Assembly (NCBI RefSeq): GCF_021028975.2
Contig: NC_059427.1
Location: 8,246,001-8,310,000 of the forward strand
Reading direction: 5' to 3'
Origin: Sphaerodactylus townsendi
Lineage: Eukaryota
Length of the DNA: 64,000 bases
Part shown: positions 25,741-62,579 of the stretch, one piece after another
Layout of the letters: each line of letters begins with the position of its first letter
How positions within the stretch are numbered: the stretch's first letter is position 1
Notes under the pieces: generated by a model
Told to the model about the DNA's origin: nothing
What the model saw: the letters and a program-made list of their open reading frames with translations, nothing else
Database searches by the model: none
Made by a program: the position numbers and the translations under genes

Positions 25741-25871
25741 CAGGGGTCTGCAACCTGCGGTTCTCCAGATGTTCATGGACTACAAATCCCATCAGCCCCT
25801 GCCAGCATGGCATGGGCTGATGGGGTTTGTAGTCCATGAACATCTGGAGAGCCACAGGTTGCACACCCCTG
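25741..25871. mobile_element. Palindromic hAT MITE
   Basis: CAGGGGTCTGCAACCTG...CAGGTTGCACACCCCTG; near-perfect hairpin; TSD cgctaggc/cactaggc. Confidence 0.85.
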
Positions 25872-26116
25872 CACTAGGCTGATCCTGTACTAAGTTAGGA
25901 ATTGGACTAAATGGCCTGAATGGTCCCTTTCAACACTATCATTCTAAGGATGCAGACGAGCGGGAATGTGTCCAGAGGAACAAGTTGGTGAGGAATCTGG
26001 AGAACAAGTTCTATGAGGAAATGTTGACAGAGCTGAGTATATTTGGCCTGGAGAAGAGAAGACTGAGAGGCAATACGAAAACCATCTTCAAGTATCTGAA
26101 GGGGTGTCATATAGAG

Positions 26117-33404: not shown

Positions 33405-34507
33405 CTATGTGGTTTGCGACATATGGATTCTTTGATGTTGCCGAAGGTCTGATGTCTGAATATACCTCTTTCCACATTCTGAACACTGATACGGTTTCTC
33501 CCCTGTATGGATCCTTTGATGGCGTAGAAGGTCAGAACGTAAACCAAATTTCTTTCCACATTCTGAGCACTCGTATGGTTTCTCACCTGTGTGGATCTTC
33601 TGATGCCGCTGAAGGTGCGATTGGCAACTGTATCTCTTTTCACACTCTGAGCACTCATAGGGTTTCTCACCTGTGTGGGTTCTTTGATGTTGCTGTAAGG
33701 ATGATGTCTGACTAAATGTCTTTCCACACTCTGAGCATTTGTAAGGTCTTTCCCCTGTGTGTGTTCTTTGATGCACAGTGAGACTTATGCGGTGACGGAA
33801 GGCCTTCCCACACTCTGAGCATCGATAGGGTTTCTCCTCTGTGTGGACTATGTGATGTTGCCGAAGGTGTGATGCCCATCGAAATCTCTTTCCACACTCT
33901 GGGCATTTATACCTTTTCTCTTCAGTGCATATTCTTCGTTGCACAGTAAGACCTACACTGTTGCTGAAAGTCTTTTCAGCCTCTGCACATGGGTTCTGCT
34001 TCTTCCCTGTGTGAATGATCTGATACTGTTGCTGGTGTGATCTTCCACTGGAGCTGTTTTCATATTCTTGGACTTTTGGGGGCTCTTCACTTGTGTGAAT
34101 CCTTTGATGTGATGTAAGAACTGTTCTCCGACTGAAGCTCTCTCTGCACACTGAACAATTATACAGTTTCTCTCCTGGGTTAATCTGTTGATGTGAAATA
34201 AAGTTCATGCTCTGACTGAACCTCTTCTCAAACTGCAAACTATCTTTTGTTTTTTCCCTGGTGTGAATTCTCAGCTGAGAGCTGAGGTTCTGCCTCTTTT
34301 GTGGTTGCTTTTCTTGCTGGATTGGGAATTCCTGATAGTGCCCTCCTTGGCAAGGAATGGGATTACCCTTCCTCTCCAAGAAGTGGCTTCCTTCCGGTCT
34401 CTTTCGTCCATTTAGATTCCCGAAGTTTCCTTTTAGATTTCCATTCCTGCATTTTCCTGAGAATGACACCTGGCGTCTCCCATCATTTTCATTCTCCTGC
34501 ATATCTC
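33405..34507 (-). CDS. SCAN-ZNF gene 3, terminal exon with 7 intact C2H2 fingers plus degenerate ones
   Basis: ORF with [10 protein letters not shown]...[11 protein letters not shown] repeats; ctttgttcaagcag| acceptor at 34508, phase 1. Confidence 0.9.
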
Positions 34508-34641
34508 CTGCTTGAACAAAGAGAGAGACAGAGGTCCAGTTACCAATGTGGCAAGAAGCCAAGTCTCAGACTGGTCCCTCCTATGAAACTTCTGTGTATT
34601 TTGTGTCCTCTGTCAGATCTGCTTTCCTGTCTCAAGCAAAC

Positions 34642-39194: not shown

Positions 39195-39420
39195 ATCCTT
39201 CAGCCTACTGGCTGATGTTGCACTAGTCACAGTTCTCTAAAGACTCTCTCAGCCCCAACTACCTCACAAGGTGACTATTATGGGGAGAGGAAGGGAAGGA
39301 GTTTGTAAGCCCCTTTGAGACTCCTTACAGTTGAGAAAAGTGTGGTATAAATCCAAACTCTTCTTCTTTTTCAACTGTGATCAGCCCTGGAGGCCAGAAA
39401 GCTGACCACTCCCTTCTTAC

Positions 39421-40318: not shown

Positions 40319-40583
40319 TCTAAAGCAACACTTCATCCTTGCAGGCAGAAGTTCTGTGTAACAAGATGCCTTTTAATCTGCACAGACAATTAGAAGTCCT
40401 TGTGGCCAAAAGCCCCACCCACAAAAATGGTATTGGTGGACTCAATGATGTTCATGGGCACCACGCTGGAGAGACCTAGACCAGCCCGTTTCTGCATGGC
40501 CTTTCCTTTTACTTTCCTGATATTGACAGAGATTTTGGTCCCAGTTGCGCTCCAGGCCCTCCCACCCAGCAGAAGGGCCTCAC

Positions 40584-41291
40584 CTGTTTCTCCTGCCTCA
40601 CAAGGAACTCCTCAGCCAGGGCAACGGCTTGGGAGCAGCAAAGGGGGTTGCTCTCCCTCACTCGGCTCTGGATCTCGGCAGGCAGGATGCTCAGCAGTTG
40701 CTCCATGATCAAGAGCTCCAGGATCTGCTCCTTGCTGTGATACTCCACTCTCAGCCACCCACGGCACATTTCCCGCAGTTGGCTGTAGGCCCCTCTTGGC
40801 CCCTCAGTCTCCTGGTAACAGAAACGCCTAAACTGCTGACGCTGCTTCTCTCGGCTTATGACTTCCCCTAATAAGATGGCTGCCTTCACTTTCCCATAAT
40901 CCTCTCTGTCTGGGACATCCAGCCTGCTGAAGGCCTCCTCAGCTTCTCCACTGAGAGCTGGCAGGAGTCGGATTACCCAGTCTTCCTTGGGCCAATGACA
41001 GGCTTTAGCCACTTGCTCAAAGGAAGCCAGAAAGGCCTTAGCATCTTCCCAGGGTGAAGGTTTCTCTGGCAAATGTGAGATTCCCCAGGGAGAGTGGGGT
41101 TTTTCCAAAGTCCTGAGGAACTCCTGCCATTGGGCTTCCCAGTGTGCAAGGGAAAGAGATCCCTTCCTTGCTTGTTGATCCATTAGATCTCCTTGTTTCT
41201 TTTGCAGGAATTCCTCAATACTACCAGCCTGGAGGACATGAGGGGATTTTGCTATTCCTTCTGATGCAATGCTTTGCCCTTCTGTTTTCAT
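40584..41291 (-). CDS. Gene 3 first coding exon: extended SCAN (Gypsy capsid NTD-like region plus SCAN)
   Basis: AFLASFEQVAKACHWPKEDWVIRLLPALSGEAEEAFSRLDVPDREDYGKVKAAIL followed by RQQFRRFCYQETEGPRGAYSQLREMCRGWL...EQILELLIMEQLLSILP; |gtgag donor; 236 codons, phase 0. Confidence 0.9.
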
Positions 41292-41980: not shown

Positions 41981-44900
41981 ATCTATTCTGTATGCACCAA
42001 ATACATCATATCAGCAAACATACTCATTCCCTTCAGCCCACGAAGAAAAGGTAGCATACAAAACAAACAAATAAATAAAAATAAAGACTTGGGTGAAACT
42101 GCCTTATACTAAATCAGACCTTCAGGATATCAGCTCCATCCTGTTTGTGCCAACTGCCAGTGGCTTGCCAGAGCCTTTCCTACCATGTTATTTGGGCTGG
42201 CTGAGGATGGAGCTGTCTGAACTGGGGATTTTCTGCATGCACGGTATGGGCTTTACCACAGAATTATGGTCCAGTCTCACTTCCACCCTGCAGAAATCCT
42301 CGTGTTCCAATTCAAGTGCAACCAACAGAGACCAGGACTGAAGAAAATCTACATAGCCCCTGAAGTTCCTTGACCATTCTAGAATGAAGATCTCTACTTA
42401 CATCTCTACACAAACAGACTGCAAGCAGGCAGGAACCCCTCCAACACGTAGTGATGACAGAACAGGAGAAAGCCTGCTCTGCTTGATACTGCTTGCCTGG
42501 ATGGTGAGATGATGTTTGACAAGTGTCCTTGCCCCAATTTTTGATCATTCCAACGCTTAATCTGCATTGCATAAAAGTGTAAACCTTCTCTTTCTTGCAT
42601 CACCACTTGTGAAAACACATGGGGCAGGGGATGGGGGAAAGAAAACTTAAAACCCTTTCCTCACTTGGAGGTTAAAGGGCCTATAGGGTCTACAGCCACC
42701 AAATGTTGTCAATTGGAAGTCAGAAAGAATTGAGGAAGTGGGTGAGAGTGTCTTTCTTTTCAACAGCTTGAGCTTAGCCCTTGAGCATTTGCAGAGTGTA
42801 AACCCCACATTCACAAAATCAGAGTAAAAAAATACAGAGACTTGGGAGAAAGGTACACGTTGACTCTCAGACCCATTTTCCCTCCACTCCAGATTTAAGA
42901 AACCAGAAAAGGCAAGGTTTACACAAGCAGCTGGTAAGTATGAGACTTTCGAGAATCCTGCCCGCATCCTCAGACTGAACAAGAATCTCATACAACTGGT
43001 CAAGCTGGGACTCTGGCACCATGTAATCCACATTTGTTCAGGTGTGGGATATTTTATCCACAAAGTGTCAGGCAAACTGGTTGGGGTGGACCATAAGAAG
43101 TCTGTCTCCTCCCATCTTAATTTATTTTATTATTTATTATTTATTTTATTAAACTTATAGGCCGCCTATCCCCGAAGGGCTTAAGGCTCCTGACCACCTG
43201 GAAGCATTGTGCAGGCCTATATTGTATAGACACAATGGTAGCAGAAAAGTACAATTTCTTCCTCCCCACGGAATAGGATTTGAAATGAGATCTAGCCACC
43301 CAGAACTCCTCAGTTTGACTGCATTTTTGCTATGGTATTCCTTTCCTTACATACCATTTCTTAACATGCCATAGTTAAGGCTTATTATGCTTTGTTAGGA
43401 CCACAGCTCCATTTCAAACTTCTGAAGTTCCTAGCCCTATGCCATTGCTTATTAAATGTCTGCTCCTACTATTTGCATTGATTTACACCTTGAACACCAG
43501 TGAGAAAGGCAAACTGTAAGTGACATAGATCAAACAAAACAAATAAATGTAATCCCCACACAATGGGGTGGGCAGTACAACAACAAAATCCCAGTCCTAT
43601 CTCACAATCCCAAAACTTGCATGTATCAGTGATTTGGGGAGGGGGGTTTGGGGAGCTGTTAACCCCTCACCTAATAGGGCATGGTGATACATACACGGAT
43701 ACATGGTCTGAGAAATCCCTATAACACCCCTGTACAGTAGGACAGGATGATAATACCCATCTTGGAGGTGAAGCGGGGAGTGAGCCTGAGAGAAGTTGTA
43801 GCTTGCTACAGTTATCCTGAATATGTGGCTGTGAGGAAAATTCAGTCAAGGCCTTCCCAGTTTGCTGTATGAACCAATGAATTACACGCATGTAAGGAAA
43901 TATCCTCCAGCCATGGATTGCCCCCATTCCTTCTGTGGATCATCACAACAATCTCTCTGTTCCACATTATAGCTGCCTTTTGTGCGAGGGGTAGCCAACG
44001 GGAAGGATTTTCAATGTTTTTGAATTCTGCATTTGACATTTTTCTGCTCCTAAAATGCAGCCCACTTGAGGGAAGTTTAGCTATGACAGAGAGAACAAGA
44101 AAAGGATTGTGAAAAAGGTTCCTAGGCAATCCTATCGGATGCATCAAGGCTCCAAGCAGGACTTTCCAAGTACAAGAAGAAGAAGAGTTTGGATTTATAC
44201 CCTGCCTTTCTCTCCTGTAAGGACTCTCAAAGCAGCTTACAAACTCCTTCCCTTCTCTACACAACAGACACCTAGTGAGATAGGTGAAGCTGAAAGAGTT
44301 CTGACAGAACTATGACTAGCCCAAGGTCACCAAGCAGGAATGTAGGAGCAGGGAATCAAATCTGGTTCACCAGATAAGGCTCATGCACAGGAGCAGGGAA
44401 TCAAAGCTGCCCTGAGTCCTCCTAGAATTGGTGGGGTGTAAGTACAATAAGTAAACCTGGTCCTCCAGATTAGAGTCCACCTGCTCTTAACCACTACACC
44501 TCTCTGGCAGTGGCTCCTGTTTTCCATTCTCGGGGATTGTCACCTTCTCATTCACCAGACCAGGCAAAAGGAGGAGAGCAAAAGGTGAAAATCTCCATAG
44601 CCCCACATGGCATTCAGCTGAGACCAGTGCAAGAACTCAAGGCAGACAGCCAAAAGGCTCAAGAGTCCACCTCTTTCAGACTGGGTGTGTGTGTGTGTGT
44701 GTCTCCATGGAACCAACTGCATTCCTCCCCCACAACCGCAACACCCTCTCCAACCTTTCCAAATCCTACAGTGATGCCAACATGCCTAATTAAGGTTGCA
44801 AACCAATCGCATGTGCCCGGCACTATATCTGTCGCATGAGTTTAGATCTACAGGGATTGGGGATGATCTCTTGTTGGTCTGGAGGAAAAACTGCCCCTTG

Positions 44901-45249
44901 CTGCTCCTTGGTGTGGGTCCATCTCCAGTTCAGAGGGTCGGGTGCAGAGATAGCAATCCTTTTGGGAAGCTGAGGAGGGGCCAGCCTGACCTTCTCTTTA
45001 GACCCTGCTCTGCACGTAGGACCTAGACAGATCCCTTTGCGGGCTGCCCACCTTCTCCCCCATTCTCCGCCCCACAACTGTTTACCCTTCTAGACATTCC
45101 CCGGTTCCGGCTCCAGCCACGGTCCTCCAACTCTCCAGCAAACAAAGCCGGATCGACACAGGAGGACGTGTGAGGGATTGAGTGTTTTTGGCCCTCCTGA
45201 AGCATCCTAGGAAACGCGGCTCGTTCACTTTAACTCTTTATGGTCCTCG

Positions 45250-46140
45250 TAGAAACAGGGCTGCTTGGTCCCTCGGGGGTTGGGAGACTGCTGCAGATTG
45301 GGAGACCCGCAGCCTGGAGGGAGGGAGGGCGCGCGTTTTGGCCGGGCTGCGGGAGGCGCTGGTTCCGAAAGCCTGAAAAGAGTCCAGAATGGCCTTGACG
45401 TCAGCAGCGTGAGGTCAGACTCGTCGCTCCCCGAACCCGGCTGGTGGCCGCTGTAGCCGCCGCCGCCGCCTCCTCCTCCTTTTCCCGCGCTGCCCATCGG
45501 CGCCTCCTCCGCGCCTCCACTTTCAGCTCTGCCTCCCGGCAAGTCTCCCTGGGCTGGCCGCCGCACCGCAGCCCCTGCGGCGTCCCCGGCACCCTGCGCG
45601 GCTCGGCTCGGCGCTCCTAGAGAGGACATTTCCACCCAAGTAGGTGAAGAGCCAGCGCCGCTTTCTCGCTCCAGCCACGTCCCTAGTGGGGGAGTCGATG
45701 ATCAGCCCTTCCTCTGAGAGAGACGGGGGCGCATCTGCCAGAGGGAGAGGGGAAGGGGGGGTCACGTGTCCCCGGGCGCCCACATGTGATCACGTGGGGG
45801 GGGGCGTCCGGGTACAAAATCCCCCCCCCCCAAGCCCTGTCTGCTGCTGGCCCTGCCAGGCTGCCTGGGACCGCTAGCCCGGCTGAGGGCGCCCGGAGGT
45901 GGGCTCCCAACTCTGGCGCCCAGGGCCCAGCCTGCTCCTGTGCCCCCCCCCCCATCACCCCTCGGGGTCCCAGGCAGCCTGGCTGTGGTAAGTGCGGGGA
46001 GGGGCGCTGGAGCAGGCCGGGCGCCATTTTCTCCCGGTACACCTTCACACATCCCCAAGTTTGAGACCTTCCACCGTTGCTGACGTGGATGCCCCCCCTA
46101 CAAATGCAAAAACCAAGGTCAAGCTGCTTGTGGTGAGCTT
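45250..46140. promoter_or_regulatory. CpG island, probable bidirectional promoter (gene 3 on minus, transposase gene on plus)
   Basis: Very high CpG; CRE TGACGTCA 45396; E-boxes GTCACGTG 45761 and TCACGTG 45790; YY1-like GCGCCATTTT 46021; plus-strand donors gtaagt 45988 and gtgagc 46133. Confidence 0.7.
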
Positions 46141-46211
46141 TTGGATTTGGACATTTGCAGGGCAACATGTGAGCTGTTCTTTTCTTTTTAACCATTGGTG
46201 TTGCCATTCTC

Positions 46212-46510
46212 CAGAGGCGTAGCTGGTCCATACTGCGCCCAGTGTGCACTCTGTGTTTTCTGCTCCCCCGTGCCGCCCTTCCATATGCCGTTCACCTCCC
46301 TTACCTTAGTTTAGCTTGGAAAAAGCAGCCTGTTCCCTTGGGGCTTGCAAGTTCTCCTGGGAAATGTAGTTTCCACCAGGCTGTTTTCAGCCTGAAGGGA
46401 ACAGGCCGCTCCTCCAGTCTGCTCTGTTTCACCAATGTAAGCAGGGGGGTGGGGAGAGAAGAGGGGTGATTTTCTGCCCCAGGCGTGTGCCCGATGCAAC
46501 GCGCATCCCT
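46212..46510. mobile_element. hAT MITE (TIR CAGAGGCGTAGCT), right end deleted in this copy
   Basis: The corresponding element in copy B (57587-57896) retains both TIRs and the TSD. Confidence 0.7.
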
Positions 46511-47394
46511 TATATTTAAGGAAATGTTGAAGGACCTGATAGCTAGAAATGCAACTGGTGTGTGCTGAATTGTAGACTTCAGGGGTATCTAATGGCTAGG
46601 ATTAATGTAGATAAATAAGTGGGTGTCTAATGGCTAGTATTAATGTAGATAAATAAACAGTAGATTGTTAGCTCAGCCCAGTGGGGCACTGTTGAGTTCT
46701 GGGCCAAAAAGACTTACTGAGTCTGTCTCCTGGGGTTTCAGTGAGGATAACTTCTTGTAGGCTATGTCCTCTAGGTTGTGGTTGAGCAGCATAGCAACCT
46801 AGATAAGATGAGAAATTAGAAAGTGGGTTTGGAAAAGTTTTTAAATGGGATGGTCTAGAGAAATGTTCTGCAAATGTACCAGAGCCCTTTGGGGGTGGGC
46901 GGTCTATTAAATCTAAAATATAAATACATAAATTACTCACTGCTTTTTATAAAAGGTCTGATCCCCACAGTCAGAATAATAACATTATGCCTTCTTAAAA
47001 GACTTTCTTCCTGTTGCATGTACATCTGAATGCTTATTAGTCTGTCACTGTGTTGCCAACTGGCCTGCAGATATAAATCCTGGGTCTGTTGCAGCCAATT
47101 GCTCTGATCTGTGTTTCAGTAAGATTCTGTTTTAAGGAGGCTTACGTGGTGAACTAGATTAGCTTGTGCACTGCCACACATGCCAACTTGCCTGCATTGC
47201 AACACTGTCTTCCTGTTGCACGTGCCTCTAAAGCATGTAATTTGTTAGGGATAACACTACAGCCTCTCTACCATGTATGCTCTGCCTGCCTCTCTACAGT
47301 TCACAGCTTTCTCCTGCATTGGCACGTTTGTTGGAGATGTAAAATGTCCTTCATTATCACAGGTGAAAAGCAGTTGGTGTGTGCAGCTACCACA

Positions 47395-50016
47395 ATGGAG
47401 CACAGACAACGAAAGAAAAAGGAGAGTGGAGCACAAGCACGGAAGAGACGAAAGTTGGCAGCGGAGGAGGCAAAGAAATCAAGCCAAGTCCTCTTGACTT
47501 TCTGTAAGAATCCTCAATCAGTTTCTTCAATCCAGTCTGAGGAGTCAACGGGTCCTTCCACAAGTTTCCCAGTAGCAGAGGTTGGATCTAGTGCAGCATT
47601 CTCAGGAGCAGAGGAGGATGTGGGGATGGCTACATCAGAGGGTGTTGAGATGGAGGAAGATGAAGAGATTTTACCTGGGAAGTCAGAACCTGTTGACACA
47701 CCTGAACCTGGTGAGCCGGAGGGTGTCGAGGAGTGTTTGACTGCCATGCAAAAAGTCATCCTAAAGCATGATGTGGGGCTTCTGCCGTTCGATGAGCAAA
47801 CCCAAAGACCACAGATCTCTGATGCACTGAGAACACAAATGGTGCAGATGGGATTCAGGTATTTTCAGAATAGCGAGGGGCCTTTCAAACCCATACCACC
47901 CCGAAATCGTCGAATGACCGAAAGGTGGTTCAAGATGAGATCAGGAGATGGTCAGGGTAAGGAGGTGACTCGATCATGGCTCATGTATTCACCCTCCAAA
48001 GGGACAGCATTCTGTTTCTGTTGCCTTCTGTTTTCAAGATCAGACGTTCAGTCTGCGTGGGAGAGGGAATCTGGGTTTGACCAGTGGAAAAGAAATAACA
48101 TGGTTATTCTTCATGAAAACGGGAGCAATCATCGGGAGTGCTTTACCCAGTGGAAATTAATGGAGAGAAATTTGGCCAAGAGCAGAGGAATGATTGACAC
48201 TGACCTACAGACAGAGGTTGAGAAGGAGAGGCAGAAGTGGCGTGACATTTTCAGCAGAGTCCTAGACTGTGTAAAAACCCTTGCGATCCAGAACTTGCCT
48301 AATCGAGGCCACAGGGAGTCATTTCAACTGGATTATGAATCCAATGTGGGAGATTTCCTGGAGTTAGTTAAGTTGCTGACTCGCCGTGACCCTGTCATGA
48401 AACAGCATCTTGCTAACATCCAAAGTGATCTAGGCGCAGTTTCTTACCTTTCACCAGGTATCCAAAATGAATTCATCCACCTCATGGCTTCTGCGGTTCG
48501 TCAGAATATACTGAGAAAGATTCGTTCTGCCAAGTACTATGGCATCATGTTTGACTCAACTCCTGATCTGGCACACAGTGACCAGATGTCAGAAGTTGTT
48601 AGGTATGTGGAAATTGATGCTGAGAGCAGAAAAGTCCGTGTTAGAGAGTCCTTTCTTGGTTTCATCTGGATCCACAAGAAAGATGCAGAGAGTTTGACTG
48701 GGGAAATCTTGAGACAGCTGGAGAAGGACAAACTGGATCTGGAGGATTGTCGGTCACAATGCTACGACAATGCTGCTGTAATGGCTGGACTCAGAAGTGG
48801 TGTACATCAAAGAATAACTGAAAAAAACCACCTGGCTTTGTCCATAAATTGTGACTATCACTCACTCAACTTGGTGGGTGTTCATGCAGCCTCACAAGAA
48901 CCAAAGATGGGCACATTTTTTGCAGACTTAGATGCTCTGTATGCGTTTTTTGCGAATTCAGACAAGCGCTGGGCAGAACTCAAAGGGGCTGTGCCTTTGA
49001 GTCTCAAGTCACAGTCTGAAACCAGGTGGAGCGCAAAGGCAAAAGCAATGAAACCAGTCCAGAGGTATCTTAAGAATATAATCAAACTTCTCCAGAACAT
49101 GGTAGATGATAGAGAAGAGACCGATGAATCAAGGCGTGAAGCGAAGGTACTGGTCAGATGCCTGTTGAGTTATGACTTTCTGACTTATGTAGGGTTTTGG
49201 GACAAGGTACTTGGTCGCATTGACCTTGTTCAAAAGAAGCTGCAGAATCCCAGCATAAACTTTCACGATGCTGCCCAAGATCTAAGATCTCTCCGAGATC
49301 ATTTTGATGCTAACAGAGACATTTTGGTCAGTGAGTCAATTGGTGAAGGGCTTCGTCTGTGCCAGAAATTCAATGTTGAATTTGAATGTTGTAGAAGATA
49401 TAGGAAAGCAATGCCTGGTGAGACAGCAAGAGACTCAGGGTTAACAGCAAAGGAGGAAATGGAAGGCAGTATGAAGGCAGCACTAGATCATCTTCACAGA
49501 GAGATGAACGAAAGGTTCACTCGTTTGCACAGCATCGATACCAACTTTGGATTCCTCCTTGATGTCGAGAAACTGTGTTATGGCACTGACATACAAGACC
49601 TACAGGAGAAGTGTGTGAATTTAGGCAATTTCTACAGCAGTGAAGTGGATGGGCAGAAGCTGTATCAAGATATTTTGGACTGCAGAATGCTACTGACAGG
49701 GCGGGATGGGCTGCGGATATCTAGTCCTGAACAGCTTCTTGAATTCATTGTTCAGTTTGGAGATGAGTTCACCTTCTTCAATCTTATTGTTGCTACCAAA
49801 ATACTGCTAACCATTGCAGTTTCCATTGCCAGCTGTGAGCGAACTTTCAGTAAGTTGAAACTGATACTTTCATATCTGAGAAGCTCAATGGGTCAGCAAA
49901 GACTCTGTGATCTTGCTCTGCTGAGTGTGGAAAGAGAAGAGACAGAGAAGACGAACTTTGATGACATCATCGACAGATTTGCATCAGCAGAGGCTGGGAA
50001 GGTGCCTCTAATGTAG
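47395..50016 (+). CDS. Intact hAT-family transposase-derived protein, 873 aa (ZMYM1-like: TTF zinc finger, DUF4371-like region, DDE core, hAT C-terminal dimerisation domain); probably domesticated
   Basis: Uninterrupted ORF; basic NLS-like RKKKESGAQARKRRK; WLMYSPSKGTAFCFCC...GFDQWK...HENGSNH; D in GIMFDSTPD (48553), D in QCYDNAAVM (48766), CDYH, ETRWS, E in ASCERTFSKLKLI (49837); Kozak ACAATGG after the tcacag| acceptor at 47362; AATAAA 50418. Confidence 0.92.
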   Translation: MEHRQRKKKESGAQARKRRKLAAEEAKKSSQVLLTFCKNPQSVSSIQSEESTGPSTSFPVAEVGSSAAFSGAEEDVGMATSEGVEMEEDEEILPGKSEPVDTPEPGEPEGVEECLTAMQKVILKHDVGLLPFDEQTQRPQISDALRTQMVQMGFRYFQNSEGPFKPIPPRNRRMTERWFKMRSGDGQGKEVTRSWLMYSPSKGTAFCFCCLLFSRSDVQSAWERESGFDQWKRNNMVILHENGSNHRECFTQWKLMERNLAKSRGMIDTDLQTEVEKERQKWRDIFSRVLDCVKTLAIQNLPNRGHRESFQLDYESNVGDFLELVKLLTRRDPVMKQHLANIQSDLGAVSYLSPGIQNEFIHLMASAVRQNILRKIRSAKYYGIMFDSTPDLAHSDQMSEVVRYVEIDAESRKVRVRESFLGFIWIHKKDAESLTGEILRQLEKDKLDLEDCRSQCYDNAAVMAGLRSGVHQRITEKNHLALSINCDYHSLNLVGVHAASQEPKMGTFFADLDALYAFFANSDKRWAELKGAVPLSLKSQSETRWSAKAKAMKPVQRYLKNIIKLLQNMVDDREETDESRREAKVLVRCLLSYDFLTYVGFWDKVLGRIDLVQKKLQNPSINFHDAAQDLRSLRDHFDANRDILVSESIGEGLRLCQKFNVEFECCRRYRKAMPGETARDSGLTAKEEMEGSMKAALDHLHREMNERFTRLHSIDTNFGFLLDVEKLCYGTDIQDLQEKCVNLGNFYSSEVDGQKLYQDILDCRMLLTGRDGLRISSPEQLLEFIVQFGDEFTFFNLIVATKILLTIAVSIASCERTFSKLKLILSYLRSSMGQQRLCDLALLSVEREETEKTNFDDIIDRFASAEAGKVPLM

Positions 50017-50979
50017 GGCCTTCATCTGTGCTTTGGAGCAAATATTGTCATGGAGTTCTCCAAAAGCTCATTCGGTGAGCTGACTCTTACAATTCTCCTT
50101 TTTTTTTTCACAGTTTGGAGGGAAAGGCAGATCCTGTGATCTCAGTTTGCTGAGTGTGGAGAGAGGACCTTGAAAGATGGATTCTAGAGTGTAATATCTA
50201 TATTGTGCAGTAAATACAGAAATGTTGTGAGAATACCCTTAAGATATCATCCCTTGTTGTTTTTATTGAAATGTCTATTAATTGAAGAATACTTTTCACA
50301 ATATAAAGGTTTGTGACTGCAACAAATCCATACCATGGAAGACTTTCCAATTTATCTTACAGAAATCTTTGTACTTTATTCTGAGTATTACAAGAGAAGT
50401 TATTTTGTAAAGACTGTAATAAAACATTCTGAAAGCATTTTAAGTCATATGACACTTAAAACACTTTAAAGCATTATAACAGTTGTAAAGCATTTTGAAA
50501 ATGTTGTCAAAAGTTTTTTATTTCCAATGTGTGGCTTGGGCCATTGCTGTGTTCAGATTTGTCCATTGGGGCATGTTCTATAATGTGATGATGACTTTGA
50601 GATGACCTATGCAAAAAAAAGTTGTTTGGTTGTGATGGAGGAGGGTGGAAAACTCAGATTTTGCACCGGGCTACAAGGCAAAGGTAAGCAAGAGAGGCCA
50701 GAAGAACTCTTTATAGAGTAAGTCAAAGCTAAGGACAGATTTCTTGAATCTTTGGGAGATCAGTTTTGGATCAGACAGAGAACAAAGCACAGCCGCAAAA
50801 GATATGGCTGGGTGTCCATCCCTCTGGTTCTTTCTAACAAAGAGAACCAAGGATAGTCTTACTATACAGAGTTGAATGTTGCTGGACAGAGGCTATGGAT
50901 GGTAGAACATGGGACCCAGAGAGATTCCCTCACAGGCTGCCCAGTCTAGGGACCTTCTCCCTCGCCTCACAGATCTTTA

Positions 50980-53700: not shown

Positions 53701-54070
53701 TTAAAGATGTTTCTTCTGGCTGAATTTCTTTCCACACTCTAAGCACATATAAGGCTTCACCCCTGTGTGACTTCTATGATGTACATTAAGTTTATCACGT
53801 GTCCTGAACAACTTTGCACACTCTGAGCACTTGTATGGTTTCTCTCCAGAATGAATTCTTTGGTGTATAACAAGGTACGATTTAGTAGAGAAGCTCTTCC
53901 CACACTCTGTGCAGTTATAAGGTTTCTCCCCTGTGTGTATCCTTTGATGCCGTAGGAGATGGGCTCTGTATAGAAAGCTCTTCCCACACTCTGAACATCT
54001 GTGGGGCTTCTTTTCGTGGTGCATCCTGAGATGTTTAGTAAATTGGGTTTGAGTTGAAAAGTTCAGTCCA
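53701..54070 (-). pseudogene. 5'-truncated C2H2 ZNF terminal exon (3 intact fingers, the next one ending at a stop)
   Basis: [33 protein letters not shown]...; the upstream sequence is replaced by duplication copy B at ~54071. Confidence 0.75.
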
Positions 54071-54380
54071 CACCATACCAGGCAAAAGATTCTCTTGAGG
54101 AGGGCAAAAGTTGAAAATCTCCATAGCCCCACATGGCATTCAGCTGTGACCAGTGCAAGACCTCCACAGCCAAAAGGCTCAAGAGTCCACCTCTTTCAGA
54201 TGGGGGGTGGGGGTGTCCATGGAACCAACTGCATTCCTCCCCCACAACCGCAACAACCTCTCCAACCTTTCCATGCCTAACTAAGGTTGCAAACCAATCC
54301 CGTGTGCCTCGGCCCTATATCTGTCGCATGAGTTTAGATCTACAGGGATGGGGGGGGGGGATCCTCTTGTTGGTCTGGAG

Positions 54381-54528
54381 CAGGGGTAGGGAACCTGCGG
54401 CTCTCCAGATGTTCAGGAACTACAATTCCCATCAGCCCCTACCAGCATGGCCAATTGGCCATGCTGACAGAGGCTGATGGGAATTGTAGTTCCTGAACAT
54501 CTGGAAAGCCGCAGGTTCCCTACCCCTG
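54381..54528. mobile_element. Palindromic hAT MITE, copy-B-specific
   Basis: TIR CAGGGGTAGGGAACCTGCGG; TSD gtctggag/g-ctggag; empty site in copy A at ~44877. Confidence 0.9.
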
Positions 54529-54686
54529 GCTGGAGGGAAAACTGGCCCCTTGCTGCTGCTTGGTGTGGGTCCATCTCCAGTTCAGAGGGACGGGTGCAGA
54601 GATGGCAATCCTTTTGGGAAGCTGAGGAGGGGCCAGCCTGACCTCCTCCTTAGGCCCTGCTCTGCACGTAGGGCCTAGCCCTAGAC

Positions 54687-54834
54687 CAGGGGTAGGGAAC
54701 CTGCGGCTCTCCAGATGTTCAGGAACTTCAATTCCCATCAGCCTCTGTCAGCATGGCCAATTGGCTATGCTGGTAGGGGCTGATGGGAATTGTAGTTCCT
54801 GAACATCTGGAGAGCCGCAGGTTCCCTACCCCTG
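54687..54834. mobile_element. Palindromic hAT MITE, copy-B-specific (same family)
   Basis: TIR CAGGGGTAGGGAACCTGCGG; perfect TSD CCCTAGAC; empty site in copy A at ~45022. Confidence 0.92.
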
Positions 54835-55019
54835 CCCTAGACAGATCCCTTTGCAGGCTGCCCACCGTCTCCCCCGTTCTCCGCCCCACAACCTTCCAGG
54901 CATCCCCCGGTTCCGGCTCCAGCCACGGTCCTCCAACTCTCCAGCAAACAAAGCCGGATCGACAAAGGAGGACGTTTGAGGAATTGAGTGTTTTTGGACC
55001 TCCTTAAGCATCCTAGGAA

Positions 55020-55940
55020 ACGCGGCTCGTTCACTTTAACTCTTTATAGTCCACGTAGAAATAGGGCTGCTTGGTCCCTCGGGGGTTGGGACCCGCAGCT
55101 TGGAGGGAGGGCGCGCGTTGTGTGTGGGCCGGGCCGGGGGCGGCGCTTGCACCTAAAGTCCTGAATGGCCTTGACGTCAGCAGCCGTGAGGCCAGACTCG
55201 TCGCTGCCTGCACCTGAGCGGCGCCAGCGGGAGCAGCCGCCTTTCCCGCCCAGCAAGAGGAGCCGCCGCCGCCGCCTCCTCCTCTTCTTCCTGCGCTGCC
55301 CATCAGCACCTCCTCCGCGCGCCCTCCGCGCCTCAACTTTCAGCTCTGCCTCCCGGCGGCAAGTCTCCGGCGTCGCGCGGCGCGGCTCGGCGCTCCTAGA
55401 GAGGAGATTTCCACGCAAGTAGGTGAAGAGCCAGCGCCGTTTTCTCGCTCCAGCCACGTCCCTAGTGGGGGAGTCGATGATCAGCCCTTCCTCTGAGAGA
55501 GACGGGGGCGCATCTGCCAGAGGGACACGGGAAGGGGGGGGGTCACGTGTCCCCGGGCGCACACATGTGATCACGTGGGGGGGGCGTCCGGGTACAAAAT
55601 CCCCCCCCCAAGCCCTGTCTGCTGCGGGCCCTGCCAGGCTGCCCGAGACCGCTAGCCCGGCTGAGGGGCGCCCGGAGGTGGGCCCCCCGACAGGTTCCCA
55701 ACCCTTCTGTGAGAAAATGGCGCCCAGGGCCCAGCCTGCTCCAATGCTCCCTCCCCCCCCCCACCCCTCGTGGACCCAGGCAGCCTGGCTGTGGTAAGTG
55801 GGGGGCGGGGGCCGCTGGAGCAGGCCGGGCGCCATTTTCTCCCGGTACCCACATCCCAAGTTTGAGACCTTCCACCGTTGCTGACGTGGATGCCCCCCTA
55901 CAGATGCAAAAACCAAGGTCAAGCTGCTTGTGGTGAGCTC
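55020..55940. promoter_or_regulatory. CpG island, duplicate of 45250-46140
   Basis: CRE, E-boxes, YY1-like site and both splice donors are retained; CpGs are not depleted. Confidence 0.65.
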
Positions 55941-55980
55941 TTGGATTTGGAAATTTGCAGGACTAAATGTGAGCTGTTCT

Positions 55981-57554
55981 TAAGAACATAAGAACAAGCC
56001 AGCTGGATCAGACCAGAGTCCAGCTAGTCCAGCTCTCTGCTACTCACAGTGGCCCACCAGGTGCCTTTGGGAGCTCACGTGCAGGAGGTGAAAGCAATGG
56101 CCTGCTGCTGCTGCTGCTCCCGAGCACCTGGTCTGCTAAGGCATTTGCAATCTCAGATCAAAGAGGATCAAGATTGGTAGCCATACATCGACTTCTCCTC
56201 CATAAATCTGTCCAAGCCCCTTTTAAAGCTATCCAGGTTAGTGGCCATCACCATCATCATCCTGTGGCAGCATATTCCAAACACCAATCAGACGTTGCGT
56301 GAAGAAGTGTTTCCTTTTATTAGTCCTAATTCTTTTCCCCAGCATTTTCAATGGATGCCCCCTAGTTCTAGTATTGTGAGAAAGAGAGAAAAATTTCTCT
56401 CTGTCAACATTTTCTACCCCATGCATAATTTTATAGACTTCAATCATATCCCCCCTCAGACGTCTCCTCTCCAAACTAAAGAGTCCCAAACGCTGCATTA
56501 CTCTCCTCATAAGGAAGGTGCTCCAGTCCCTCAATCATCCCTCGTTGCCCTTCTCTGCACTTTTCCTATCTCCTCAATATCCTTTTTTTGAAGGATCACG
56601 GCGACCAGGGCGGATTTTGTTACTCAGTGCTGAGTCATGCCACTGCCACTTTAAATAAGGGCATGACAATCTTTGCAGTTTTATTCTCAATTCCTTTCCT
56701 AATTATCCCCAGCATAGAGTTTGCCTTTTTCACAGCTGCGATGCATTGAGTTGACATTCCCATGGAACTATCAACTAAGGCGCTAAATCCTTTCCTGGTC
56801 TGTGACTGATAGCACTGACCCCTGTAGCGTGTATGTGAAGTTTGGATTTTTTGCCCCTATGTGCATCACTTTACATTGTGCTACATTGAACTGCATTTGC
56901 CATTTCTGAGCCCACTCACCTAATTTATCAAGGTCCGCTTGGAGCTCTTCGCAATCCTTTGTGGTTCTCACCACCCTACATAATTTGGTATCATCTGCAA
57001 ACTTGGCCACCACGCTACCCACCCCCTACTTCCAGGTCATTTATGAATAAGTTAAAGGCACTGGTCCCAAAACGGATCCCTGGGGGACACCACTCCCTAC
57101 ATCTCTCCATTGTGAGAATTTCCCATTTACACCCACTCTTTGCTTCCTGTTTCTTAACCACTTTTTAATCCATAGGAGGACTTCCCCTCTTATTCCTTGA
57201 TTGCTGAGTTTTCTCAATAGTCTCTGGTGAGGAACTTTGTCAAAAGCCTTTTGGAAATCCAAGTAGACAATGTCCACTGGTTCCCCCTTATCCACATGCC
57301 TGTTTACACCCTCAAAGAACTCTAGTAAGTTTGTAAGACAGGATTTGCCTCTGCAAAAGCCATGCTAACTCTTTCTCAGCACGTCTTGCTTTTCTACATG
57401 TTTAATAATTTTATCTTTAATGATAGATTCTACTAATTTACCAGGATCAGATGTCAAACTGACTGGCCTGTAATTTCCCGGGTCCCCCCTAGATCCTTTC
57501 TTAAAGATTGGTGTGACATTGGCCATCTTCCAGTCTTCAGGGATAGAGCCTGAT
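55981..57554 (-). mobile_element. 5'-truncated CR1 LINE, same family as 37067-39194, in the 5'UTR intron of copy B
   Basis: taagaacataagaac tail; RT motifs YLDFQKAFDKVPH and FADDTK; absent from copy A (gagctgttct|tttcttttta). Confidence 0.92.
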
Positions 57555-57586
57555 CTTTCTTTTTAACCATTGGTGCTGCCATTCTC

Positions 57587-57896
57587 CAGAGGCATAGCTG
57601 GTCCATACTGCGCCCAGTGTGCACTTTGTGTTTTCCGCCCCCCGCACAGCCCTTCCATGCCCTTACCTTAGTTTAGCCTGAAAAAGCAGCCTGTTCCCTT
57701 CAGGCTGAAAACAGCCTGTTGGGAACTACACTTCCCATGAGACCTTGGGGCTTGCAGGAACAGGCCGCTCCTCCAGTCTGCTGTGTTTCTCCAATGTAAG
57801 CATTTGCCCGGGGGGGGGGGGGGGGGGGGAGGGAGCGATTTTCTGCCCCAGGCATGCGCCTGGTGCAATGCACATCCCCCAGTAGCTCCGCCTCTG
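57587..57896. mobile_element. hAT MITE predating the duplication
   Basis: CAGAGGCATAGCT...AGCTCCGCCTCTG; TSD ccattctc/ctattctc. Confidence 0.8.
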
Positions 57897-58773
57897 CTAT
57901 TCTCCCTCTCTTTTTCTCTTATTTTTAAACAAATGTTAAAGAACCTGATAACTAGAAATGAAATGCAACTGGTGTGAGCTGAATTGTAGACTTCTTCATG
58001 GGTGTCTAATGGCTAGGATTAATGTAGATAAATAAACAGTAGATTGTTAGCTCAGCCCAGTGGGGCACTGTTGAATTCTGGGCCAAAAAGACTTACTGAG
58101 TCTGTCTCCTGGGGTTTCAGTGAGGATAACTTCTTGTAGGTTATGTCCTCTAGGTTGTGGTTGATCAGCCTAGCAACCCAGATAAGATGAGAAATTAGAA
58201 AGTGGGTTTGGAAAAGTTTTAAAATGGGATGGACTAAAGAAATGTTCTGCACATGTACCAGAGCCCTTCGGGGGTGGGCGGTCTATTAAATTTAAAATAT
58301 AAATACGTAAATTATTCACTGCTTTGTATAAAAGGTCTGGCCCCACAGAGAGAAGAATAATATTATGCCTTCTTCTTAAAAGACTTTCTCCCTGTTGCAT
58401 GTGCATATGAATGCTTATTCATATTTCACTGTGTTGCCAACTGGCCTGCAGATATAAATCCTGGGTCTGTTGCAGCCAATTGCTCTGGTCTGTGTTTCAG
58501 TAAGATTCTGTTTTAAGGAGGCTTACATGGTGAATTAGATTAACTTGTGCACTGCCACACATGCCAACTGGCCTGCATTTCAGCACTGTCTTCCTGTTGC
58601 ACGTGCCTCTAAAGCATGTAATTTGTTAGGGATAACACTACAGCCTCTACTATGTTTGCTCTGCCTGCCTCTCTACAGTTCACAGCTTTCTCCTGCATTG
58701 GCAAGTTTGTTGGAGATGTAAAATGTCCTTCATTATCACAGGTGAAAAGCAGTTGGTGTGTGCGGCTACCACT

Positions 58774-61452
58774 ATGGAGCACAGACAACGAAAGAAAAAG
58801 GAGAGTGGAGCACAAGCACGGAAGAGACGAAAGTTGGCAGCGGAGGAGGCAAAGAAATCAAGCCAAGTCCTCTTGACTTTCTGTAAGAATCCTCAATCAG
58901 TTTCTTCAAATCAGATCTGAGGAGTCTTGGGATCCCTTCCACCAAGTTTCCCAGTAGCAGAGGTTGGATCTGAGTGCAGCACTTCTCCCAGAAGCGAGGA
59001 GGGATGTGAGGATGGCTACATCAGAGGGTATTGAGATGGAGGAAGATGAAGAGAGATTTTTACCTGGGAGGTGGGAACCTGGTGACACACACCTGAACCT
59101 GAGGTAGGCGGGAGGGTGTCGAAGGAGTGTTTGGCTACGCCATGCAAAAAGTCATCCTAAAACATGATGTGGGGCTTCTGCGTTGATGAGCAAACCCAAA
59201 GAACCTACGGTCTCTGATGCACTTTCGAGAACACTGGGAAATGGTGCAGATGGGATTCAGGTATTTTCAGAATAGCGAGGGGCCTTTCAAACCCATACCA
59301 CCCGAAATCAGTGTGAGATGACCCGAAGATTGGTTCAAGATAGAGATAGGAAATGGTCCAGGAGTAAGTGACTTCAGCTCATGGCTCTCATAATCCTATT
59401 CACCCTCCAAAGGGACAGCATTCTGTTTCTGTTGCCTTCTGTTTTCAAGATCAGACATTCAGACTGCATTGGAGAGGGAATCTGGGTTTGGCCAGTGGAA
59501 AAAATATGGCAGGATTACTGATCATGAAAATGGGAACAATCATCGGGAGTGCTTTACCCAGTGGAAATTAATGGAGAGAAATTTGGCCAAGAGCAGAGGA
59601 ATGATTGACGCTGACCTACAGACAGAGGTTGAGAAGGAGAGGCAGAAGTGGCGTGACATTTTCAGCAGAGTCCTAGACTGTGTAAAAACCCTTGCGATCC
59701 AGAACTTGCCTTATCGAGGCCACAGAGAGTCATTTCAACTGGATTATAAGATCCAATGTGGGAGATTTCCTGGAGTTAGTTAAGTTGCTGACTTCGCCGT
59801 GAGCCTAATGTCAAACGAAACAGCATCACTGGCAATCATCAAAGTGATCTGGCGCGGTTTGCTACGCTTTCCATAGACATCCAAAATGAATTCATCCACC
59901 TCTAAATGGCTTCTTGATTGCATTAGAATATGCTGAGAAAGATTTGATTTCTGCCAAGGAGTACTATGGCATCATGTTTGAAGCTCAACTCCTGATCTAG
60001 CACCACGGTGACCAGATGTCAGAAGTTATTAGGTAATGTGGAGAGTGATGCTGAGAGCAAGAAAAGTCCGTGTTAAGAGAGTCCTTTCTTGGTTTCATCT
60101 GGATCTACAAGAAAGATGCAGAGAGCTTGACTGGGGAAATCTTGAGACAGCTGGAGAAGGACAGAAAACTGGATCACAGAGATTGTCGGTCACAGTGCTA
60201 CGACAATGCTGCTGTGGCATATTTCTGGACTCTCCAAGTGGGGTGTACATCAAAGAATAACTAGAAAAAACCACCTGGCTTTGTCCATAGAATTGTGATA
60301 ATCACTCACTCCAACTTGGTGGGTGTTCATGCAACCTCACAAGAACCAAGATGGGCACATTTTTTGGGCACAGATGCTGTATGCGTTTTTTTTGGAATTC
60401 GAGGATGGCTGGGCAGAACTCAAGGGGCTGTGCCTTTGAGTCTCAAGTCACAGTCTGGGAAACCAGGTGGGCGAGGGCTAAAAGCAATTGAAACCAGTCC
60501 AGAGGTATCTTGGAATAATCAAGCTTCTCCAGAACATGGAAGATGATAGAAGAGACCGATGAATCAAGAAGTGATGAGCGGGAATTGCTGGTCAAGAATA
60601 CTGCTGTTAGAGTTGATTATGGCTTTCCACGACATGTGGAGTTTTAGGACAGGTAGCAGTGCATTGACCTTGTTCAAAAGAAGCTGCAGAATCCCAGCAT
60701 AAACTTTTCCGCGATGCTGCCCAAGATCCTAGAATCTCAAGAGATGTTTGATGCTAACAGAACATTTTGGTCAGTAATTAATTGGTGAACCCGTCTGTGC
60801 CAGAAATTCAATGTGGTGAATGTTGTAGAAGATATGAAAGCAATGCCTGGTGAGACAGCAAGAGAGACTCAGGGGTTAACAGCGAAAAGGAGGAAATGGG
60901 AGGCGAAATTGTGAGGCTGGCACTAGATCAATGCTATTTTTTGAGAGATGAGCGAAAGAGTTCACTCGTTTGCTGCCTCGATACAACTTTGGATTCTCCT
61001 TGATGTAGAAACTGTGTTATGGCACTGACATACAAGACCTACAGGAAGTGTGTGAATTTAGGAAATTTCTACAGCAGTGATGTGGATGGAGCGGCTGTAT
61101 AAAGATAGGCTTTTGGACTACAGAATGCTACTTTGACGGAAGTAGGGATGGGCTGCGGATATCTAGTCCTGAACAGCTGTGATTCATTGTTCGGTTGGAG
61201 ATGGTTCCTACCTTCTTCAATCTTATTGTTGCTACCAAAATACTGCTAACCATTGCGGTTTCCATTTGCTGGCTGTGGCCGAACATTCCAGTAAGTTGAA
61301 ACTGATACTTTCATATCTAGGAAATAAATGGGTCAACCAAAGACTCACCAGTCTTGCTCTGCTGGTATGGAAAGAGACAGAAGGCAGGCTTTTGATGACA
61401 TCATCGACAGATTTGCATCAGCAGAAACTGGGAAGGAGTGCCTCTAATGTAG
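58774..61452 (+). pseudogene. Second hAT transposase copy with many frameshifts as assembled (pseudogene or mis-polished intact paralog)
   Basis: Colinear with 47395-50016 from ATG to ATGTAG; clean patches (58774-58908, 59400-59747) alternate with dense 1-3 bp indels. Confidence 0.75.
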
Positions 61453-62579
61453 TGATGGGGCCTTCATCTGTGCTTTAAGACAAATATTGTCATGGGGTTC
61501 TCCAAAGAAACTCATTCGGTGAGCTGACACCTAATTCTCGCACACAGTTTTGGAGGAAAGGCAGATCCTGCGGTCTCCAGTTTGCTGAGTGTGGAGAGGA
61601 CCGAAGATGGATTCTAGAGTGTAATATCTATATTTTTTGGTAAATGCAAATGTTGTGCCAGAATACAGCAAGATATAATGTTGTTTTTTTATTGAAATGT
61701 CTATTATTCAGAATACTTTTCACAATATAAAAAAGGTCTGTGACTACTATGATCATACCATGGAAGACTTTCCAATTTATCTACCAAGAGAATGTGCACT
61801 TTATTCTAGATGTTACAAAGTTGTTTATTAGACTGTGGCTGTTAAACTGTTTGATAAGCATGACACTTAAAACACTTTAAAGCAGTATAGGTTAGCTTGT
61901 TTAAGTATCAAAATTATTTCTGCTGTGTGGCATGGACCATTGCTATGTTCAGGTTTGTATGTTGGGGTATGTTCTATAATGTGATGATGACTTTGTAGAA
62001 GCGTGGTGCAAAAAAAAAGGATTTAAGTTTGAGTAAATTGGTGGGGAGGGTGTCATCACATATGGGGGGGGTGGGGATGGGGAAGCCGGACAACAGATTT
62101 TTGGGCTGCCTTTCCCTAGATACGCCTCTAAGATGGGAAACAATGCCATCGTTCACCAAAGCAGCCATTTTCTTTAGGAGAACTGGTCTCTGTCAGCTGG
62201 ACAGCAGGGCTAGGGTTGCCAAACACCAGATTGGGGTGGGTGGGTAATGATCTCCTGGAGTTACAACTGATCTCTAGAATACACAAATTGCTTATTTGTC
62301 TAGTATTTATTTAGTTAGTTACTTGATTTCTACCCTACACCTTTACTTGCAAAGCCAACCCAGCACAGGTTCCAACAGTCAATAAATAAAACAAAAACCC
62401 TACACACGTTTAAAACATTATTAACTTCCCTTGGAGGAAGGGGTATACCCTAGTGGTCCTCTAGCTCTAAATCCCACTCCTCTACAGGTTCCATCCCTCC
62501 GTCTCCAAGTGTTTCCCAAATTCTCCTGGGGAGCCCAGGACAGGGCTTGCAGGAAGAGGCTGTTTCTTCCTGAGTCTGT

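Follow-up and report, generated by a model that had tools for sequence, protein, structure and literature searches.

In the present study, the whole 64,000-nt stretch of Sphaerodactylus townsendi contig NC_059427.1 from 8,246,001 to 8,310,000 (the window) was analysed around an uninterrupted hAT transposase ORF, here called copy A. Copy A is probably an immobilised copy of a recently active, dispersed hAT family, and the tests run gave no clear sign that its transposase has been adopted by the host. A first-pass annotation had described this locus as an apparently captured host gene; the immobility of copy A, its intact motifs and its position near a CpG island and a SCAN-ZNF gene were supported, and NCBI annotates it as a gene, but domestication was not established. 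The family belongs to the DUF4371 / FAM200-ZBED5-like hAT DNA transposons, an assignment that does not fix Ac, Buster or Tip because DUF4371 occurs in Tip-family elements too (PMC3942097).

The ORF of copy A occupies window positions 47395-50013 on the plus strand and encodes 873 aa with zero internal stops; the open frame around it extends from 47164 to 50016, with the ATG at 47395. It corresponds to LOC125428571, which NCBI models as a gene with two isoforms, and two such isoforms usually require transcript support. The coding features are the following:
47395..50016, plus strand: transposase ORF and stop codon (LOC125428571), with a TTF-type zinc finger, DUF4371, the catalytic core and the hAT dimerisation domain.
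47488..47535, plus strand: GT..AG stretch of 48 nt, left out of NCBI isoform X2 (857 aa), from protein comparison and sequence.

Pfam recognised DUF4371 in the copy A protein with an E-value of 1.3e-16 and the dimerisation domain, Dimer_Tnp_hAT (PF05699), at residues 794-847 with 2.1e-07 (31.1 bits against a cut-off of 21.4). Moreover, D387, C486, R544, W545 and E815 were invariant in a family alignment of 25 proteins, and D458 and H489 were conserved in at least 90%. Direct comparison of the protein with the PDB by phmmer gave zero matches, and Hermes transposase (4d1q, 2bw3) was reached by the family profile only, to which its C-x2-H, RW and SCER-FS blocks aligned weakly (E = 0.008); the catalytic aspartates, D387 and D458, were placed by family conservation and not via this alignment. 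Both marks of the hAT superfamily, an RNase-H-like DDE core with C-x2-H and RW blocks and a C-terminal dimerisation domain, are present. The previously claimed unbroken ORF with D-D-E, CxxH, RW and dimerisation motifs was therefore real by translation, by Pfam and by the 25-protein alignment.

Copy A has one neighbouring duplicate, copy B, and several dispersed relatives. The elements within the window are as follows:
46778..50675, plus strand: copy A of the hAT element (5' UTR region, ORF and 3' UTR), truncated at both ends and lacking the terminal ~30 nt and the TIR.
54070..62130, plus strand: copy B, a duplicate of block 44552-50675 (CpG island, MITE and hAT) by homology to copy A, error-like from 58900.
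62115..62130, minus strand: 3' TIR of copy B, TAGAGGCGTATCTAGG on that strand; L001 and L003 share this terminus.

Three further loci match copy A over 46778-50650 at 84-89% identity, L001 and L003 on chromosome CM037614.2 and L002 on CM037616.2, 4.6 Mb away; these dispersed copies, with homology that stops at the termini, thus lie on two chromosomes. The subterminal sequence is common to copy B, L001 and L003, as is the 3' terminus, and beyond the 3' TIR the flanks of the three differ. The fact that copies reach a common 3' TIR shows transposition of the family. L002 also has this 16-nt terminus, but with other subterminal sequence beside it, and the match may be the end of a separate MITE. 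Many near-identical copies with full TIRs and TSDs had been named beforehand as evidence against a host gene; copies on two chromosomes do reach the 3' TIR. An 8-bp TSD was not demonstrated for any copy: matching 8-mers were absent beside A, B and L001, and the 5' ends of all copies were truncated or interrupted. Two candidate 5' TIRs of the family, CAGGGGGACATATGGG in L002 and CAGATATAAATCCTGGG at 47059, were considered, and neither was confirmed.

Copy A itself stops at ...CAGATTTTGCACCGGGCT (50675), whereas its relatives run about 30 nt further to the TIR ...CCCTAGATACRCCTCTG. B, L001 and L003 retain the family 3' TIR, CCTAGATACRCCTCTG, which copy A lacks, and on the 5' side of copy A at least 350 nt of element sequence common to L001, L002 and L003 are missing. 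The reported lack of a TIR pair at copy A was accordingly borne out, and with both transposon ends lost copy A is, as read from its sequence, immobile. Furthermore, WGS contigs at least 95% alike cover the ORF several times more deeply than its flanks, and the 3' subterminal region at ~1000x, which suggests further young copies and MITEs in the genome, although these figures are contigs summed over four WGS data sets and are not copy numbers. L001 still has an open 869-aa frame after 225 private substitutions and no more than two deletions, both in frame; selection for open frames therefore acts somewhere in the hAT family, a point against the immobilised-copy reading.

Quartet counts made A and B sisters (71 sites against 17 and 14). 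Copy B later received palindromic MITE copies (~54373-54529 and ~54681-54842) and the 3' part of a LINE (55981-57546, minus strand). Macro-transposition of the duplicated block was ruled out, since its left end is not TIR-like and a TSD is lacking. Copy B, with 67 indels and 7 stops, was also tried as a decayed pseudogene and neutral control. However, its excess changes begin abruptly at 58900, and in the ORF it carries 227 singletons and A 18, whereas the adjoining 770 nt hold 10 in B and 14 in A. The ratio of indels to substitutions is 0.29 in B, whose indels are all small, and 0.14 in L002, and gaps in this assembly were filled with ~3x nanopore reads. The transition/transversion spectrum did not separate the changes of B from those of A. 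The decay looks like assembly error from unpolished nanopore gap fill, and copy B was therefore dropped as a neutral yardstick.

Several gene-like signals surround the transposase, as follows:
40509..41291, minus strand: SCAN-domain coding exon of a SCAN-ZNF gene (Pfam SCAN 3.2e-34; 644-aa NCBI model; C2H2 exon at 33405-34562).
45001..45900, no strand: CpG island (GC 0.66, CpG o/e 0.70), duplicated with copy B (54836-55800).
45988..46134, plus strand: two candidate splice donors, G/GTAAGT after 45988 and G/GTGAGC after 46133, both conserved in copy B.
46212..46520, plus strand: MITE of a very abundant family with a hAT-type terminus (CAGAGGCGTAGCTGG...), from a TIR-like match and an internal inverted repeat, in copies A and B.
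47356..47362, plus strand: splice-acceptor-like site ...ATCACAG/ just 5' of the ATG, conserved in all five copies aligned.
50418..50423, plus strand: AATAAA poly(A) signal, conserved in L001 and L003.

The CpG island separates the SCAN-ZNF gene, on the minus strand, from the transposase ORF, on the plus strand; it lies 3.7 kb upstream of the SCAN-ZNF coding start (41291) and may belong to, or be co-used by, that gene; the transposase lies ~1 kb downstream of the island, inside the SCAN-ZNF cluster. The SCAN exon and the C2H2 arrays corroborated the SCAN and ZNF parts of the described neighbourhood, and the island, donors, acceptor, Kozak ATG (ACCACAATGG) and AATAAA are all in the sequence. The proposed splice structure held in part, in that its motifs exist, but the donors and the acceptor are short splice-like motifs whose use is putative. 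Moreover, the acceptor, the ATG context, the AATAAA and positions 46778-47394 of the putative intron are common to dispersed copies on two chromosomes, which means that these signals and most of the supposedly aged intron arrived with the transposon. As the alignment of the copies reads, the acceptor, the Kozak ATG and the poly(A) signal are family features and not host acquisitions. The MITE in the putative intron had been called old and decayed; it is not evidently old, since contigs at least 95% alike cover 46258-46451 at ~1000x the single-copy depth of the flanks (again a depth sum). A separate depth peak at 47034-47227 is accounted for by 45 nt that resemble a SINE.

The same signals admit a second reading, nascent domestication by promoter capture, which we consider unlikely but the most serious alternative. 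Transcripts from the CpG island, perhaps bidirectional with the SCAN-ZNF gene, would splice from 45988 or 46133 to 47362, the host would express the transposase under weak to moderate selection, and the unit would then have been duplicated. Conservation of both donors in A and B agrees with this, as do the NCBI model with its two isoforms and the loss of both transposon ends while the ORF was retained; in addition, capture usually proceeds through an acceptor directly upstream of the transposase ORF (bioRxiv 10.1101/2020.05.07.082677). However, a protein search of partial N-terminal proteins from transcript assemblies gave none near-identical to copy A. A host coding exon fused in frame to the transposase is absent from the NCBI products, in which the CDS is one 2622-nt exon from the transposon's own ATG. 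In its fuller form, which is somewhat less likely again, copy A would be a gecko-lineage-specific transposase gene caught in the middle of capture through a bidirectional SCAN-ZNF promoter and its own acceptor, duplicated together with the promoter and kept under weak selection with a full catalytic core. Both copies may then be intact, if the decay of copy B is assembly error.

Selection on the ORF bears directly on this alternative. Since the A/B split, the A lineage has accumulated ~26 substitutions in the ORF with an N:S of 20:6 (omega ~0.9), or 10:3 under a strict rule, where the neutral expectation is 3.66:1. An omega of 0.2 or less was rejected (p = 0.0004; p = 0.007 with a 21-nt cluster counted as one event), as was 0.39 or less (p = 0.04), and 0.5 was not (p = 0.13). 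The N:S of the A lineage thus fits neutrality and contradicts the strong constraint typical of domesticated transposases, which weighs against promoter capture, although moderate constraint would be compatible with it. Furthermore, of 170 conserved columns copy A departs from the family in 15, one of these departures being N488Y in the C-x2-H block, compared with 1-6 departures in active-looking relatives. The earlier claim of purifying selection was not sustained, given the neutral-like ratio, the altered conserved positions and the transposon-borne intron and signals.

The open frame itself speaks more for promoter capture, because the neutral chance of an open ORF after 26 substitutions and matching indels is P ~0.04-0.07, or 0.003-0.007 at the 5' flank rate (~2%), and because the ORF of the A lineage evolved 2-4 times slower than its flanks (Fisher p = 0.007). 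However, synonymous sites are as slow as non-synonymous ones, which points to gene conversion or chance and not to protein-level selection. Copy A was also noticed for being intact in a family of several copies, so an open frame is subject to ascertainment. For an immobilised family member, the preferred reading, the ORF would still be open because little time has elapsed (~1% change on its own branch).

Relatives in other species were then considered. In a protein search, none exceeded 65% identity in other annotated squamates, and the syntenic orthologs in other lizards that had been proposed as a check were not found among annotated proteins, which is a further point against promoter capture. 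Outside Sphaerodactylus, the best proteins belong to a cordylid lizard, a sea urchin, ticks and a toad and show 56-65% identity. Distribution across the protein tree is patchy: one star clade unites sequences from sea urchin, tick, cordylid lizard and gecko at 56-59% identity, a pattern resembling that of horizontally moving transposons. A single WGS contig of a second species, a close congener (run X4), spans the A/B-type junction at 46705-46830 and favours promoter capture.

Taken as an immobilised family member, copy A may have had the following history. By cut-and-paste transposition, the family would have dispersed across the Sphaerodactylus genome, and it would have given rise to, or have ends in common with, very abundant MITEs. 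One copy would have inserted ~1 kb downstream of the CpG-island promoter region of the SCAN-ZNF gene and lost its 5' part; the truncated copy and the island would then have been duplicated locally into copies A and B, after which copy A would have lost its 3' TIR. We infer this order of events from the truncations and the duplication. The acceptor, the start context and the poly(A) signal would be the transposon's own expression signals.

It is distinctly improbable that copy A, and perhaps copy B, though itself immobile, is a source of working transposase in trans for abundant MITEs and deletion derivatives carrying the family's ends, with no host function: its D/D/E, C-x2-H and RW motifs and dimerisation domain are intact, the CpG island could drive its expression, and the ~1000x depth of the 3' subterminal sequence and of the MITE with a related terminus implies recent mobilisation of MITEs, but summed depth does not equal copy number, the supplier could be another intact copy such as L001, and N488Y with the 14 other departures may have reduced activity.

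On the plain reading, LOC125428571 is an ordinary transposon-derived gene model whose value is mainly cautionary: the gene-like signals beside a transposase may every one derive from the transposon, and where an assembly has been gap-filled, sequencing error can pass for decay of a paralog. If promoter capture were true, the locus would represent the earliest stage of domestication, seldom caught, with promoter and UTR captured and the catalytic core whole in a ZNF cluster; it would be addressable with existing RNA-seq (PRJNA746057 is on record) and congeneric genomes.

With respect to known systems, host-transposase fusion genes such as KRABINER are born by splicing into the transposon's own acceptor (bioRxiv 10.1101/2020.05.07.082677). 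Unlike these, copy A has no host coding exon, and at most a 5' UTR and a promoter would have been captured. Domesticated hAT genes (ZBED5/8/9, ZMYM1, GTF2IRD2 and FAM200A/B) resemble copy A in their TIR-less ORF, adjacent host promoter, ZNF neighbourhood and annotation as genes. Such genes are single-locus, with synteny kept for tens to hundreds of My and dN/dS well below 1; in contrast, copy A coexists with related mobile copies in the gecko genome, is without an ortholog outside the genus among annotated proteins, and shows a neutral-like N:S after its immobilisation. Autonomous DUF4371 / FAM200-ZBED5-like hATs, annotated as 'ZMYM1-like' or '52 kDa repressor of the inhibitor of the protein kinase-like', differ from copy A in that copy A is without either end and cannot move. 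In other respects they correspond to it, as they carry the same domain set, and autonomous hATs likewise have a single long ORF, a short TIR beginning CAG (here in the sister copies) and a patchy distribution across phyla.

Copy A, the hAT element at 46778-50675 on the plus strand, is probably a truncated copy from a hAT family that was active recently; having lost its ends, it is immobile. It would have landed next to a ZNF promoter and been duplicated together with it, and its open frame would reflect youth and ascertainment. The uninterrupted 873-aa transposase ORF reported in the first-pass annotation was confirmed, the frame being open over 47164-50016 and the 873 aa counted from the ATG at 47395. 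The product had exactly one match in the public collection, on S. townsendi CM037616.2 (GCA_021028975.2), which puts the window at approximately 8,246,001-8,310,000, and the NCBI gene is LOC125428571, labelled 'uncharacterized protein', whose isoform X2 (857 aa) is otherwise identical but lacks 16 residues. The motifs named in the annotation (D-D-E, CxxH, RW and dimerisation motif) were likewise kept. Pfam matches were DUF4371 and the hAT dimerisation domain; in an alignment of copy A with 24 relatives, D387, C486, R544, W545 and E815 were invariant and D458 and H489 at least 90% conserved. The family-alignment profile gave a weak match to the Hermes transposase (E = 0.008), in which the C-x2-H, RW and SCER-FS blocks aligned, and a single-sequence search gave no hit. 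The features within and upstream of the ORF were as follows:

46134-46211 and 46521-46777: the only remaining other sequence of the proposed 1.2-kb intron
46212-46520: MITE with a related terminus, part of that intron
46778-47362: 5' region of the element, part of that intron
47488-47535, plus strand: 48-nt GT..AG stretch matching the 16 residues absent from isoform X2

The protein search recovered three more S. townsendi proteins that were 71-80% identical to the copy A product. Among the dispersed copies of the family, L001 and L003 lie on another chromosome and L002 lies 4.6 Mb off on the same chromosome; DNA homology of copy A to all three runs from 46778 to approximately 50650 at 84-89%. 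Copy B (the duplicate of copy A in the window), L001 and L003 extend about 30 nt past the last homologous base of copy A to a common 3' terminus, ...CCCTAGATACRCCTCTG, beyond which their flanks are unlike, and a common terminus with differing flanks is the signature of transposition. L002 has the same 16-nt terminus, but in another subterminal context, and this may be a separate MITE end. Moreover, whole-genome shotgun contigs of other copies run on into the 3' terminus where copy A diverges, leaving loose ends at 50675. Thus, with regard to the claim that no intact TIR pair or TSD flanks copy A, the missing 3' TIR was established. At the other end, L001, L002 and L003 have common extra 5' element sequence that is absent in A and B, which indicates that copy A is truncated at 46778 as well; a 5' TIR of the family and an 8-bp target duplication were sought and none was established. 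Around L002 (8001-18542; CM037616.2, ~12.95 Mb), the 828-aa NCBI model P0018 joins upstream ZNF-gene-like exons (repeated ...TEVKDEEESW...) to a copy from this hAT family whose catalytic middle is absent from the model; P0018 may reflect a host-transposase fusion transcript or an artefact of gene prediction.

Depth data came from four whole-genome runs of two organisms in one study. Summed contig depth over the ORF was several-fold that of the unique flanks, and at least 95% likeness gave approximately thousand-fold depth over the MITE (46258-46451) and the 3' subterminal region (50526-50700); these sums, which are not copy numbers, are taken only as a hint of young relatives and MITEs. Furthermore, one contig of the second organism, 126 nt long, covers the truncation junction (46705-46830), which implies that the A/B-type insertion is common to a close congener.

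Self-comparison demonstrated that 44552-50620, including the CpG island, both donors, the MITE and the element, is repeated at 54070-62130. The two blocks are 3.4 kb apart with a ZNF-exon fragment in the spacer, and copy B was later hit by two palindromic MITEs and by a CR1-like LINE, of which the 3' part is present. These insertions and their counterparts elsewhere in the window are:

55981-57546, minus strand: 3' part of a CR1-like LINE (RVT_1) in the upstream region of B
37629-39195, plus strand: second copy of this LINE part (RVT_1), inverted relative to the first
54373-54529, 54681-54842 and 25735-25877: near-perfect palindromic MITE copies of ~157 nt, with arms 91-97% complementary

The two LINE parts are 96-97% identical and one of them was inserted in B, so the LINE family is young. 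The palindromic MITEs at 54373-54529 and 54681-54842 entered the CpG-island flank of B after the duplication. No TIR or target duplication was found at the left edge of the block (44552 / 54070). The right edge (50676 / 62131) coincides with the hAT 3' end. The block may have arisen through an aberrant transposase-mediated event or as an ordinary segmental duplication.

Copy B was considered as a neutral control and rejected, since its many apparent frameshifts form a pattern that is not biological. Within the ORF, 71 shared-derived sites (vs 17 and 14) make A and B true sisters, and over the 770 nt directly upstream the lineages are symmetrical, with 10 vs 14 private changes. Their alignment has 3 gaps in the 900 nt before 58900 and then 8-13 gap openings per 150 nt. 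Over 58900-62130 (ORF and 3' UTR of B), 227 substitutions and 65 small indels are private to B, whereas A has 18 and 0 of its own; the indel-to-substitution ratio is 0.29 in B vs 0.14 in the naturally decayed L002. The assembly was built from 10X linked reads; TGS-GapCloser used 6.6 Gb of nanopore data to fill its gaps, and polishing followed (bioRxiv 10.1101/2021.08.13.456260). A second, highly similar copy is just the place at which an assembly of this kind would leave a gap. From 58900 on, copy B is most likely an unpolished nanopore gap fill of raw-read quality, and B may be truly intact; if the small indels in 58900-62130 are error, it is a second near-intact copy.

The CpG island (GC 0.66, o/e 0.70), both donors (45988 and 46133), the acceptor, the Kozak context and the AATAAA (50418-50423) were all found in the sequence, and the ZNF cluster setting was verified as three C2H2 arrays and a SCAN exon on the minus strand. 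In a five-copy alignment, the acceptor at 47362, the ATG surroundings, a small upstream ATG (47345) and the AATAAA were conserved in copies on other chromosomes; these gene-like signals are the transposon's own. Transposons often hold an acceptor directly 5' of the transposase ORF, predisposing them to capture (Cosby et al., bioRxiv 10.1101/2020.05.07.082677); as a family feature, the acceptor permits capture and is no evidence that capture has occurred. Relative to the coding start (41291) of a minus-strand SCAN-ZNF model of 644 aa, the island is 3.7 kb upstream on that gene's own strand, where its 5' UTR exon and promoter would be expected. By this position the island may serve the SCAN-ZNF gene alone or work bidirectionally.

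The argument for purifying selection on copy A from its intact ORF was not supported. Changes in the A lineage were polarised by B and the three dispersed copies, and errors in B are unable to create such changes. The ORF had 26 changes with N:S = 20:6 (13 changes, 10:3, under a stricter rule) against a neutral expectation of 3.66:1, giving omega of about 0.9. Six of the non-synonymous changes fall in a 21-nt cluster in the TTF finger (48091-48111; KKY.RIT. to KRNNMVIL), a segment unlike in every gecko copy, and taking it as a single event gives 15:6. Omega of 0.2 or less was rejected with either count (p = 0.0004 and p = 0.007, respectively), omega of 0.39 only with 20:6 (p = 0.04), and omega of 0.5 was not rejected. 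A random substitution creates a stop with probability 0.042, and given 26 such changes, plus indels at the ratio of the clean A/B stretch, the chance of an open frame is P ~0.04-0.07. The ORF changed more slowly than the flanks (0.5-1.0% vs ~2%, p = 0.007), and did so in both synonymous and non-synonymous sites; gene conversion between tandem copies or chance explains this no less well than constraint on the protein. L001 has kept an open frame despite 225 private substitutions, its only two deletions being in-frame, and A vs L001 gives dN/dS of 0.39 (dS 0.35), so frame-preserving selection acts somewhere in the history of the family; such selection is expected for lineages still mobile and is not assignable to the present loci.

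A nascent promoter capture of copy A under weak constraint is rather unlikely: the intact ORF and the loss of both ends speak for it, whereas the acceptor, start context and poly(A) signal are the family's own, the N:S ratio is neutral-like and no conserved squamate ortholog was seen in the protein search or the maximum-likelihood tree. A stationary, putatively still active transposase source is an improbable reading. Of 170 columns strongly conserved in the family, copy A deviates at 15, one of these being N488Y inside the C-x2-H block (nine of the relatives deviate at only 1-6, and the gecko paralog L001 at 32).

The truncated copy of a mobile family is the reading preferred here. The best proteins outside the genus were 56-65% identical and came from a cordylid lizard, sea urchin, ticks, toad, hagfish and ray. 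One relative at 58% identity, P0007 from Hemicordylus capensis (1047 aa), combines KRAB (PF01352), DUF4371 and the hAT dimerisation domain and is a predicted KRAB-hAT fusion in another lizard. In the maximum-likelihood tree, the gecko copies cluster as a single clade with a long stem, nested among a star-like set of unrelated hosts; this star-like clade holds gecko, cordylid lizard, sea urchin, tick and metagenome proteins at 56-59% identity. Judged from these sequences, the host pattern looks like that typical of horizontally moving hAT elements.
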